This document shows, in pieces, positions 47,240-52,649 of a stretch of DNA of 64,000 nucleotides. This DNA is from Hyalangium minutum (GTDB lineage Bacteria > Myxococcota > Myxococcia > Myxococcales > Myxococcaceae). The notes beneath the pieces are model-generated. The model was not told the origin of the DNA. It made no database searches and saw only the letters and a list, made by a program, of their open reading frames with translations. The translations under genes and the position numbers were made by a program. Position 1 is the stretch's first letter, and each line of letters starts with the position of its first letter. The DNA is taken from the NCBI RefSeq assembly GCF_000737315.1, contig NZ_JMCB01000014.1:124001-188000 (forward strand). Direction: 5' to 3'.

Positions 47240-48865
47240 ATGATCGAAAGCGACGCCTCAGCCGGGGGCGCGCCACCAGCCGTGATGGATCCCCTGCTGG
47301 GCAGGGTCCTCAACGAGCGCTTCAAGATCCTGGAGGCGCTCGGCGCTGGCGGCATGGGCCGCGTGTACAAAGCCATCCAGGCCCCCCTGGATCGCCCCGT
47401 CGCGCTCAAGGTCCTCAACCCTCAATACGGTCAGGAGAAGGATCCCGGGTTCCAGCGCCGCTTCTTCTTCGAAGCCAGCGTCACCGCCAAGCTGCGCCAC
47501 CCCAACACCGTCACCGTCATCGACTACGGGAAGACGGACGACGGCATCTTCTTCATCGCCATGGAGTACCTGGAGGGCCAGACGCTCTCCCAGCTGCTCA
47601 CGCAGGTCGGCCCTCTGCCCTGGCCCCGGGCGCTCACCATTGCCCAGCAGATCGCCCGCTCGCTGCGCGAGGCCCACAAGATCGGCCTCATCCACCGGGA
47701 CTTGAAGCCCGCCAACGTGATGATCCTCACCCAGGAGACGGATCATGACGTGGTGAAGGTGCTGGACTTCGGGCTGGTGAAGTCCTTCATGCCTGACAGC
47801 GGCCAGTTCCCCGCGGACGTGTCGCTGACCCAGGCCGGCGTCATCCTCGGCTCGCCGCAGTACATGGCGCCCGAGCAGGCGCGCAACATCTCGGATCCCC
47901 GCAGCGACGTGTACTCGCTGGGCGTGGTGCTCTACCAGATGCTCCTGGGGCGCCCGCCGTTCCACGCCGAGCAGGGCATCGACATCATCGTCAAGCACAT
48001 CAACGAGCCGCCCCCGGCCTTCGCAGCCGTGTGGCCCGACCACACCATCCCTCCCGAGGTGGAGGCGATCGTGATGAAGTGCCTGGCCAAGCGCCCCCCG
48101 GATCGCTTCGACTCCATGGACGCGGTGCTCGAGAGCATCCGCCGCGCCATGGCCGCCGGCAACTTGAGCGGCGTCTACTCCGGCCCGATCAGCTCCCTCA
48201 CGTACATCGGCACCGGCCCCATCACCGGCCCCATCGGAGGGCCGCATCACTCGCCCTCAGGCGCCTCGACGATGTCGCTCGATATCGCCGTGGATGAGCC
48301 GGACAAGCGCAAGCGCCGCAACTCGCTGCCCATGGCCCTGTTCGGCGGCGCGGTGCTCATCGGTGTGTCCGTGGCCCTGGTGTTCGCGCTGCGCACGCCG
48401 ACGCCCAAGCCCGTGACGGACCTGCCTCCGCTGCCGGTGCAGCAGCCCACCGCCACCGCTCCCACGCCCGCGGTCACGCCTCCCTCCGCCGAGGAGAGCC
48501 CGCCCGCCCCGGAGGCCGAGGCCGAGGCCGAAGAGCTCCTCATCCCTCCGGTGGAGGCCGCCGAGCCCGAGGCGAAGCCCGAGCGCGTGCGCTTCGTCAT
48601 CAACAGCGAGCCGAGCGGCGCGCGGGTGACGTACGCGGGCAAGAGCCTGGGCACCACGCCGGTGGAGCTGGACGTCGCCCTGGGGAGCAAGGGGCTCGCT
48701 CGCGCCGAGCTGACGTTTGATCTCAACGGGTACTCGCGCCAGACGGTCACGGCCGAGGGCAAGGGCCCAACGGTCCGCTTTACCCAGAAGCTGAAGAAGA
48801 AGGGCTCGTCGCGGCCGGCCAGGCCGTCGGGCTCGAATGGCTACAAGGACGATCCCTACCAGTGA
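47240..48865 (+). CDS. Membrane Ser/Thr protein kinase with C-terminal PEGA domain
   Basis: [27 protein letters not shown] and GSPQYMAPEQ. TM ALFGGAVLIGVSVALVFAL. PEGA INSEPSGARV...LGTTP. ATG at 47240. Confidence 0.93.
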   Translation: MIESDASAGGAPPAVMDPLLGRVLNERFKILEALGAGGMGRVYKAIQAPLDRPVALKVLNPQYGQEKDPGFQRRFFFEASVTAKLRHPNTVTVIDYGKTDDGIFFIAMEYLEGQTLSQLLTQVGPLPWPRALTIAQQIARSLREAHKIGLIHRDLKPANVMILTQETDHDVVKVLDFGLVKSFMPDSGQFPADVSLTQAGVILGSPQYMAPEQARNISDPRSDVYSLGVVLYQMLLGRPPFHAEQGIDIIVKHINEPPPAFAAVWPDHTIPPEVEAIVMKCLAKRPPDRFDSMDAVLESIRRAMAAGNLSGVYSGPISSLTYIGTGPITGPIGGPHHSPSGASTMSLDIAVDEPDKRKRRNSLPMALFGGAVLIGVSVALVFALRTPTPKPVTDLPPLPVQQPTATAPTPAVTPPSAEESPPAPEAEAEAEELLIPPVEAAEPEAKPERVRFVINSEPSGARVTYAGKSLGTTPVELDVALGSKGLARAELTFDLNGYSRQTVTAEGKGPTVRFTQKLKKKGSSRPARPSGSNGYKDDPYQ

Positions 48866-48867
48866 AC

Positions 48868-51384: not shown

Positions 51385-52649
51385 CCTTCCTCCGCTCCCA
51401 GGGCCCGGCCCTCGCGGGCCTGCTCCTCTCCTCCGCCCTCGCCAGCTCGTGCGAGGCGCCTCCCGTGGTGGCCACCCAGGACCGCCAGCAACAGACGCGC
51501 TACGGCCGCATCGAGGGCAGCGTCGTCGTCCAGGGGCCCGCGCGCGGCAACGCCGTGGTGTTCCTCTACGACGCCACGCGTCCCCCGCCGCCGCAGGGCA
51601 CGGGGCGCCCCGTGGCCTTCAGCATCACCGCGCTCGAGGACTTGTACGGGACGGACGTGAACACGTTCACGTCCGGGCCCTTCACCGCGCCCTTCACCTT
51701 CCCGCTGGTGCGCCCAGGCAACTACCTGCTGCGGGGCTTCATCGACACGGACACGTGCCGCACACCGAGCTGCCAGCAGGGCTCGTGCGCCCCCGAGGTG
51801 ACGCCCTGCCACGGCCCGGACTTCATCCCCTGGTACAACGTCACCGCCGAGCCGAACATGTTCGACGTGGGCGGCGCCGCGGTGGACGCGGCCAACCGCG
51901 TCCCGCGCGTGTTCACCGTGGGCGAGACAGAGGATGGGACGCCTGTGCCGGTAACAGGTGTCACCGTGAGCTTCTCCTCGGACACCGCCACCGTGAGGGC
52001 AGACCGCCCCGTCTTCAACGTGGTCGGCTCCGCGACGATTGATCCGAGCGGCATCCAGACCTTCAAGCTGCGCTCGCGCCCTATCAGTGATGGCGTGGTG
52101 ACCCTGCGCGCTCCCGTGTTCATCGTGCGCTTCGTGGACGAGAACCAGGACGGCGTGCCGGATGATGCCAACAAGGACGGCGTGCCGGACCTCTGGCCAC
52201 GTATCGTGGTGCGCAAGCTGTCGGACAGCGGCACCGGCCTGGCCGACGAGAACGATCTGGACGGCAACGGTGTGCTTGACACGGAAGGCGTGGACTACCC
52301 GCACCTCGACGGCACCCAGGACGGCAAGCCGGATGCCGTGATTCTCGGCACCACCCTCCTGGCGGACTCGCTCCAGAGCGCGCTCTATGACGCCGATGGC
52401 CACCCGAAGATGGACGCCGTGGTGCCGGTGACGGAGCTGAACGTAGCCCTGCGGCCCATGGCGATCGACGTGCGCGACCCCGCCGCCCCGGCCATCCTCA
52501 AGACCATGCCGGCCGGCCGGTACGGCATCACCGTGCTCCAGTACACAGGGCAGGTGTGGAAGCTGCCCAACGAGCTGTCTCCGCAGCTCGCTCCGGCGCT
52601 CGGCCTGCCCCCCGTCGAGGGCCAGGGCTTCTCCTTCCAGGTCCGCTAA
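51381..52649 (+). CDS. Hypothetical lipoprotein with Dx[DN]xDG Ca-binding-like loops
   Basis: Lipobox LASS-C, start overlapping the receptor stop (ATGA), and DENQDG, DANKDG, DLDGNG and DGTQDG motifs. Confidence 0.8.
   Translation: MTFLRSQGPALAGLLLSSALASSCEAPPVVATQDRQQQTRYGRIEGSVVVQGPARGNAVVFLYDATRPPPPQGTGRPVAFSITALEDLYGTDVNTFTSGPFTAPFTFPLVRPGNYLLRGFIDTDTCRTPSCQQGSCAPEVTPCHGPDFIPWYNVTAEPNMFDVGGAAVDAANRVPRVFTVGETEDGTPVPVTGVTVSFSSDTATVRADRPVFNVVGSATIDPSGIQTFKLRSRPISDGVVTLRAPVFIVRFVDENQDGVPDDANKDGVPDLWPRIVVRKLSDSGTGLADENDLDGNGVLDTEGVDYPHLDGTQDGKPDAVILGTTLLADSLQSALYDADGHPKMDAVVPVTELNVALRPMAIDVRDPAAPAILKTMPAGRYGITVLQYTGQVWKLPNELSPQLAPALGLPPVEGQGFSFQVR

Follow-up and report, generated by a model that had tools for sequence, protein, structure and literature searches.

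A conserved kinase, TPR-extended TonB-dependent receptor and lipoprotein module of Myxococcota as a candidate trans-envelope signalling system

Introduction

To our knowledge, cell-surface signalling by TonB-dependent receptors (TBDRs) is known only in the form in which an STN domain of the receptor, an anti-sigma factor and an extracytoplasmic function (ECF) sigma factor make up the relay, as in FecA-FecR-FecI. We likewise know of no established input for most of the hundred or more Hanks-type Ser/Thr kinases encoded in myxobacterial genomes, nor of any solved TBDR structure that bears a tetratricopeptide repeat (TPR). A published survey of 34,893 TonB-dependent transporters recognised five N-terminal architectures, drawn from four Pfam types (PF13620, PF13715, STN and AMIN) or having no extra domain, and TPR is not among the N-terminal domains that it lists (PMC6434023). 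Neither PEGA nor TonB comes up in a recent atlas of bacterial Ser/Thr kinases, and our full-text literature search brought to light no account of a Hanks kinase paired with a TPR-extended TBDR. Here we describe three adjacent genes in a 64,000-nucleotide stretch of the Hyalangium minutum genome (contig NZ_JMCB01000014.1, positions 124,001 to 188,000; hereafter the window), which encode a Hanks kinase with a periplasmic C-terminus, a TBDR with an N-terminal TPR module and a lipoprotein. The three genes form a conserved module across Myxococcota and, judging from their sequences, they probably constitute an undescribed route by which a signal at the cell surface reaches the cytoplasm.

Results

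All three genes lie on the forward strand of the window. The kinase gene (47240..48865, 541 aa) ends in a TGA stop at 48863-48865, which is followed by two bases (AC) and then by the ATG of the receptor gene at 48868 (48868..51384, 838 aa); the stop codon of the receptor and the ATG of the lipoprotein gene (51381..52649, 422 aa) overlap as ATGA at 51381-51384. The open reading frames (ORFs) are real, with a GC content at third codon positions of 0.85-0.92, which is coding-like. An earlier note on this DNA, made from the sequence alone, had proposed that these genes form a trans-envelope signalling system. Its description of three tightly coupled genes, of a kinase with a Pro-rich periplasmic stalk, a PEGA domain and a C-terminal GYKDDPYQ, and of a TPR module with a flexible linker ahead of the TonB box of the receptor was borne out by the sequence itself, by Pfam and, for the receptor, by AlphaFold2. 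It had further staked the proposal on the genes being co-conserved, and we observed that the triplet stays together across Myxococcota in unrelated neighbourhoods, as follows.

A genome scan anchored on the lipoprotein gave 46 loci from Myxococcaceae, and the order kinase, receptor, lipoprotein was intact wherever the locus was long enough. This order alone proves little, since the wider neighbourhood is syntenic there too. A search of 1.84 billion representative proteins recovered full-length homologues of the TPR-extended receptor down to about 31% identity, and a profile search located receptor homologues in Sorangium, Sandaracinaceae, Polyangiaceae and metagenome-assembled genomes of other Myxococcota. 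Nine genomic contexts covering eight receptors from these distant lineages always showed the kinase, then the TPR-receptor, then an unannotated lipoprotein, and the flanking genes were unrelated to those of the window and differed between lineages. In seven of the eight distant cases kinase and receptor are immediate neighbours, and on the P0466 contig a 656-aa ORF separates them. The proteins encoded downstream at the distant loci are homologues of the window lipoprotein (23-27% identity, E 2e-16 to 2e-6). Source annotations of all the homologues were generic ('TonB-dependent receptor' or 'hypothetical protein'), and a cluster look-up for the orthologue in M. xanthus DK1622 returned strains of the M. 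fulvus group only, with generic names.

A metagenome scan was anchored on the TPR, and the 80 loci most similar to the TPR of the window were kept. The pooled set comprised 129 loci with a TPR-receptor, 89 of them with at least 2.2 kb of upstream DNA, and a Hanks kinase was found upstream on the same strand in 86 of these 89. Other kinase domains occur in the same flanks at one per ~105 kb, so that adjacency by chance would be expected in roughly 2% of cases. A homologue of the lipoprotein was encoded directly downstream in 44 of the 45 receptor-anchored loci with enough downstream DNA. Many of these loci are phylogenetically related and the counts are not independent; the argument rests on about five classes of the kinase C-terminal peptide and on lineages whose flanking genes are unrelated. 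Across Myxococcota the three genes form a conserved module, not a chance neighbourhood.

Several variations on the module were seen. Tandem pairs of TPR-receptors share one kinase and one lipoprotein at L052 (10001-15168), L079, L109, L114, L096, L119 and L080. A gene for an FKBP-type peptidyl-prolyl isomerase lies between kinase and receptor on the opposite strand at L102 (5917-7026, - strand) and L132 (5904-6902, - strand), and for this reason the module is not always a single operon. Proteins with FG-GAP and/or Peptidase_S8 domains are found repeatedly, in several distant lineages, at a few kb or less from the module (L047 11377-15054, L048 14968-16730, L050 1-3906, L052 18921-20471, L134 1-2885 and L135 1-2826), and are not present in the window.

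The catalytic domain of the kinase, which would be cytoplasmic, spans residues 29-295 (47324..48124; Pfam Pkinase, E 8e-47, 160 bits). The Gly-loop, the catalytic Lys and the HRDLKxxN, DFG and APE motifs are all intact, and by fold and motifs the protein is a Hanks-type (eukaryotic-like) Ser/Thr kinase. The top hydropathy window (mean Kyte-Doolittle 2.46) marks a transmembrane helix at residues 365-384, MALFGGAVLIGVSVALVFAL (48332..48391). Since this is the one strongly hydrophobic helix, the C-terminal 157 residues are predicted to be periplasmic and the protein to cross the inner membrane once. This periplasmic part begins with a stalk rich in Pro, Ala, Glu and Thr (residues 396-451, 48425..48592; 27% Pro, 73% for the four residues together), followed by a PEGA beta-sandwich domain (residues 452-520, 48593..48799; PF08308, 27.8 bits against a cutoff of 20.8) and a variable linker rich in basic residues and Ser (residues 521-533, 48800..48838). 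PASTA repeats were not found in the kinase by the Pfam scan. Its best NCBIfam match is NF033483 (PknB_PASTA_kin), confined to residues 21-307, whose score of 310 bits stays below the cutoff of 450. Kinship with the gliding motility protein GltJ was considered and rejected, as NF033761 reaches 21.7 bits against a cutoff of 450 over the Pro-rich stalk, a match that we treat as compositional.

The kinase terminates in ...KKKGSSRPARPSGSNGYKDDPYQ, and the extreme C-terminal peptide GYKDDPYQ-COOH (48839..48862) is conserved across loci as a motif at the stop codon. In nearly every orthologue the last residues are a variant of [YF]-K-x(1-2)-[DE]-(x)-P-Y with an optional Q or K after it, and the two exceptions both come from loci with a broken-up kinase match. 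On six-frame translation of 1.5 Mb of locus DNA the motif was found at a stop codon 101 times, always in the ORF directly upstream of a TPR-receptor save for one chance hit in a 13-codon ORF. Across loci the tail is 78-88% identical, as against 24-39% for the adjacent basic linker, 31-56% for PEGA and 19-40% for the poorly conserved stalk. By these comparisons no other periplasmic element of the kinase is as well conserved as the tail, which always stands at the free C-terminus.

PEGA was found in 82 of the 90 orthologous kinase ectodomains and is absent in clade B (L050/L051, L053, L134 and L135). The clade B kinases likewise retain all catalytic motifs; having lost PEGA, they carry a disordered Pro/Ala/Gly-rich linker of ~130 residues that terminates in GYMxLPDD[FL](K/Q)-COOH, and the receptors of this clade have a distinct TPR signature, PKDDARRHF...HPATLYNIAR. 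The clade is under-sampled, because the metagenome sample kept the loci whose TPR most resembles that of the window. As clade B keeps the tail without PEGA, the constant periplasmic feature is a tethered C-terminal peptide and not PEGA. The earlier note had made PEGA part of the relay; its absence in clade B argues against an essential role for it, and it is the tail that looks like the essential partner element instead.

The N-terminal module of the receptor begins directly after a Sec signal peptide (residues 1-22, 48868..48933, cleavage ALA|DE, as read from the sequence), and in all receptor homologues the conserved TPR starts at mature residue 1. It consists of two TPR motifs and a capping helix (residues 23-115, 48934..49212). 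Pfam matches fall at residues 34-105 (TPR_16, 37.3 bits, cutoff 32.7; TPR_2, 33.9 bits, cutoff 27; TPR_19, 34.5 bits, cutoff 25), and AlphaFold2 predicts helices at residues 24-40, 44-57, 61-73, 77-89 and 95-115 with a predicted local distance difference test score (pLDDT) of about 90. Against consensus TPR proteins the profile of the module gives E 1e-19 to 1e-65, and PEX5 and Hop/STIP1 are among the solved relatives. By sequence and model alike the module is a canonical TPR, and since it is N-terminal to the TonB box it must be periplasmic. In distant homologues the TPR is 49% identical, compared with 61% for the plug, 29% for the barrel and 14% for the linker.

Among 86 non-identical TPR sequences, the invariant or near-invariant polar residues are R25 (K in clade B), R29, H31, H60, N66, R69, Y71 and Y87. 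The conserved polar residues sit on the A helices, which line the TPR groove. For a possible carboxylate clamp the candidates among them are R25, R29, H31, N66 and R69, some of which are also general TPR consensus residues. These features suit a TPR that reads acidic/aromatic peptides at a C-terminus. Recognition of the kinase tail by the TPR gains indirect support from the conservation of this tail, its position at the free C-terminus, its persistence where PEGA is lost and its change alongside the TPR clade.

The TPR is followed by a flexible linker (residues 116-193, 49213..49446), for which pLDDT falls below 50 at residues 119-130 and 154-204. An amphipathic helix, DAQALAALVDRLEKAIARAEA, is predicted mid-linker at residues 132-154 (49261-49329) in this otherwise disordered region between TPR and TonB box, and similar Leu/Ala-patterned segments occur in the linkers of distant homologues; the helix could pack back onto the TPR or serve in dimerisation. 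The TonB box region EERVVTASRR (residues 194-203, 49447..49476) is conserved across 56 homologues, with E194, E195, V197, V198, A200 and S201 nearly invariant. It precedes a Plug domain (residues 209-316, 49492..49815; PF07715, E 3.7e-23) and a 22-strand beta-barrel (49855..51381; PF00593 at residues 353-813, E 2e-35). The AlphaFold2 model of the whole receptor, built on a 56-sequence alignment (pLDDT 83.5, predicted template modelling score 0.82), shows in order five helices at residues 24-115, disorder, the helix at 132-154, disorder to residue 204, the plug and the 22-strand barrel. With a plug inside a barrel and a TonB box N-terminal to the plug, the protein is, by sequence and predicted structure, a TonB-dependent receptor/transporter. 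A search with Pfam (E <=0.1) detected no STN domain in the receptor, only TPR families, Plug, the barrel and weak chance matches.

The closest solved structures are Cir, BtuB, FepA, PirA and heme receptors (17-21% identity; Foldseek E ~1e-33 for Cir and BtuB). We looked to these similarities for a substrate and found them uninformative at such identities, NCBIfam matches all being far below their cutoffs. An Rfam scan of the whole 64-kb window at gathering thresholds likewise found no riboswitch or other RNA element that might hint at a substrate. The C-terminus of the receptor, ...SMTVIP (51358-51381), is not the aromatic residue usual for outer-membrane barrels, and distant homologues end in ...RF.

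The third protein is, from its signal peptide and lipobox cysteine, a bacterial lipoprotein. The lipobox reads ...LASS|C24 in the window protein and L-x-x-G-C in its homologues, in which the Cys is invariant. The predicted structure (AlphaFold2, pLDDT 86) has three beta-sandwich domains. In M. xanthus a Lys at +2 marks lipoproteins of the inner membrane and an Ala at +7 those of the matrix (PMC3222651). The window lipoprotein has Glu and not Lys at +2, and its +7 residue is not Ala, which makes an outer-membrane location likely. A motif scan identified three acidic loops of the DxNxDG type (DENQDGVPD, DANKDGVPD and DLDGNGVLD) at residues 253-270 and 292-300 (52137..52280), in which D261, D262, N264, D266, N291, D292, G297 and D300 are invariant or nearly so among 72 homologues; the loops are putative calcium sites. 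The homologues range from 355 to 710 aa. No Pfam or NCBIfam family matched the lipoprotein, and Pfam, NCBIfam and Foldseek against the PDB found no similarity to the SusD, TbpB/HpuA or BtuG families. Assignment of its fold was also attempted and abandoned: Foldseek against the PDB gave generic multi-Ig pilin/adhesin matches with TM-scores of at most 0.29, together with a weak DUF4876 match, from which no function could be drawn.

Between 41.8 and 58.1 kb of the window, the neighbours of the triplet encode a PAS histidine kinase, an Omp85 protein, response regulators, a Peripla_BP_2 protein, an unannotated ORF of 162 aa, MsrQ/MsrP-like proteins and an M49 peptidase. The Peripla_BP_2 gene (46080-46943, - strand), which is divergent from the kinase gene, is an orphan of the BtuF/IsdE/FecB class whose NCBIfam matches are all below cutoff, and neither an ABC permease nor an ATPase is encoded alongside it. 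Its product is 82-94% identical within Myxococcaceae in most loci, above the identity of the triplet. We considered it as a further part of the module and rejected it, as it is conserved only within syntenic Myxococcaceae and is absent from the distant loci. Just upstream of the stand-alone response-regulator gene that follows the triplet there is a sigma-70-like promoter match (TTGACA-17-CATTAT; 52748-53303, + strand), and this gene is syntenic in Myxococcaceae only. The MsrQ-like (Ferric_reduct) and MsrP-like (Oxidored_molyb) pair lies further downstream (53896-55517, - strand), with its synteny kept within Myxococcaceae.

Three further Hanks kinase genes are present in the window on the reverse strand (26985-32339, 60290-62077 and 62043-63998); the ends of two of them overlap, and the product of one is a Pkinase-AAA_16-GAF-HATPase_c fusion of 1784 aa. 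The gene at 34674-41762 (+ strand) encodes a protein of 2362 aa in which eleven Big_13 Ig-like repeats are combined with multiple Kelch propeller repeats.

Discussion

The conserved TonB box and the intact kinase motifs suggest that transport and phosphorylation both operate in this module. We propose that the receptor is a functional TonB-dependent transporter whose TPR would hang in the periplasm on a flexible linker of ~80 residues. The periplasmic part of the kinase would form a long flexible stalk, with PEGA in most lineages, presenting the [YF]-K-x-[DE]-(x)-P-Y-COOH peptide, which would dock in the groove of the receptor TPR; with tethers of ~80 residues in the receptor and of 100-150 in the kinase, the two could easily meet across the periplasm. 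When a ligand binds, or TonB moves the plug, at the outer membrane, the engagement or clustering of the kinase may then change, and with it Ser/Thr phosphorylation in the cytoplasm. Third, the module would require the lipoprotein, probably as a subunit that captures ligand or acts as a lid at the outer membrane. We infer the contact between TPR and tail, the outside-in direction and the role of the lipoprotein from comparative sequence data. That the tail docks on the receptor TPR and couples the state of the receptor to cytoplasmic phosphorylation, the three proteins working as one trans-envelope module, is the best supported of the readings considered and in our estimate an evenly balanced proposition. 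More tentatively, there may be a phylum-wide class in Myxococcota in which a TBDR reports ligand occupancy directly to a Ser/Thr kinase, by way of a periplasmic TPR that captures the C-terminal motif of the kinase.

It is also conceivable that the genes are merely co-regulated and that TPR and tail do not touch. With PEGA or the stalk the kinase would then sense some molecule of the periplasm, perhaps the substrate that is imported, and regulate expression or metabolism, and the TPR would serve the receptor itself, for example as a dock for the Ton complex, peptidoglycan or another copy of the receptor. The presence of PEGA in most of the kinases and the sharing of one kinase by tandem receptor pairs are consistent with such an arrangement, as is the precedent of other TBDR extensions, for instance the CarboxypepD_reg domain of Oar and SusC, which do not signal to anti-sigma factors (PMC6434023). 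However, clade B has lost PEGA and yet keeps both the C-terminal peptide and the association, and nothing in this explanation accounts for a seven-residue C-terminal peptide that is the best-conserved periplasmic element and occurs only beside TPR-TBDRs. We regard both halves of it as unlikely, if still worth weighing.

The comparative evidence for contact between TPR and tail applies equally to a connection that runs the other way. The tail may dock on the TPR so that information or force passes from the inner membrane to the receptor, with the kinase controlling transport, gating or localisation of the receptor according to the state of the cytoplasm, or simply pinning it at envelope contact sites. 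A Pro-rich kinase stalk that spans the periplasm does resemble the architecture of TonB. Nevertheless, the kinase has no ExbB/ExbD-like partner or energy source, no such genes being found beside the triplet in the window or at the distant loci, and the retention of all catalytic motifs across the kinase family argues for an enzymatic output. An inside-out link or structural tether of this kind seems to us rather improbable.

In a third alternative, the target of the tail is the lipoprotein or the plug, on its periplasmic face, and the TPR has some other partner. The lipoprotein is as tightly co-conserved as the receptor, which would suit this arrangement. On the other hand, lipoproteins associated with TBDRs are usually surface-exposed, the present one diverges far more between loci, in sequence and in length, than the tail does, and TPR domains are established readers of short C-terminal peptides, the profile of this TPR being related to those of PEX5 and Hop. 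We give this alternative little credence. Lastly, although Myxococcota encode many Hanks kinases, at least three others in the window among them, adjacency by chance in a kinase-rich genome is effectively excluded by its occurrence in 86 of 89 loci where roughly 2% would be expected, by the unrelated neighbourhoods and by the restriction of the tail to this position.

Other observations count against a signalling contact between tail and TPR. Three loci have a TPR-TBDR without an adjacent Hanks kinase: at L081 and L104 a divergent gene lies upstream of the receptor, and at L122 a histidine kinase with a HATPase C-terminus occupies the kinase position directly upstream (4382-6196 and 6794-9436). 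At some loci kinase and receptor are separated by another gene. Several of the conserved TPR residues, N66 among them, are general TPR consensus and are not diagnostic of a peptide clamp. The TPR positions that track the tail class (e.g. 30, 38 and 58) also track phylogeny, and since tail and TPR both follow phylogeny their co-variation could reflect shared descent. Among the genes around the module, no cytoplasmic target was co-conserved with it.

If contact between tail and TPR does couple receptor to kinase, this would be the first link of TonB-dependent transport to Hanks-kinase phosphosignalling, and a bacterial periplasmic example of a TPR reading a C-terminal peptide. One family of kinases would, with the conserved module, have a defined physical input, and Gram-negative bacteria would have a second, mechanistically distinct way to sense arrivals at the outer membrane. 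The system is compact and easily tested, being a matter of an 8-residue peptide against a 93-residue TPR. A further outcome of the analysis is a TPR class of N-terminal extension of TBDRs, which is absent from the list in the published TBDR survey.

Comparison with described systems places the module beside several of them without merging it into any. Oar and SusC are TBDRs of myxobacteria or Bacteroidota which, like the present receptor, carry an extra periplasmic domain ahead of the TonB box; there it is a non-signalling CarboxypepD_reg extension with a beta-sandwich fold, whereas here it is an alpha-solenoid. Hop TPR1/2A, which reads EEVD-COOH, and PEX5, which reads the SKL-COOH of peroxisomal targeting signal 1 (PTS1), share with it a canonical TPR in which the A helices bear conserved basic and Asn residues, and the proposed ligand here would similarly be an acidic/aromatic peptide at a free C-terminus. 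They differ in having three or more TPR motifs as against two and a cap, and the setting here is periplasmic; the profile match to these proteins reflects general TPR similarity, and peptide binding by the present TPR is only proposed. PknB/Stk1, with PASTA repeats, and PknD, with a beta-propeller, resemble the kinase in their N-terminal cytoplasmic Hanks domain, single transmembrane helix and extracytoplasmic C-terminal region. The kinase described here has no PASTA repeats and instead a mostly disordered stalk, an optional PEGA and a short linear motif at the C-terminus, and its presumed input is an outer-membrane protein partner and not a small ligand on the ectodomain.

The closest parallel is with FecA-FecR-FecI, FpvA-FpvR-PvdS and FoxA. 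In these systems too, a TBDR with a TonB box has an extra periplasmic domain N-terminal to the box, and its gene adjoins that of a single-pass inner-membrane protein, which acts in the cytoplasm through its N-terminal part and has its C-terminal part in the periplasm. The differences are that the extra domain is a TPR here and STN (PF07660) there, that the partner is a Hanks Ser/Thr kinase here and a FecR-type anti-sigma factor there, and that a third, obligatory lipoprotein gene is present here. Genes for a FecR-type anti-sigma factor or an ECF sigma factor were absent among the neighbours between 41.8 and 58.1 kb of the window and beside the receptor at the distant loci; an ECF/zf-HC2 pair lies ~4.3 kb downstream of the receptor at L134 and is not conserved elsewhere. 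With no STN and no adjacent FecR-type anti-sigma or ECF sigma factor, the module does not belong to FecA-type signalling, and since no ECF sigma factor is encoded at the locus its output would be phosphorylation and not sigma release. By analogy, what the module resembles is the signalling logic of the FecA type, carried out with non-homologous parts.

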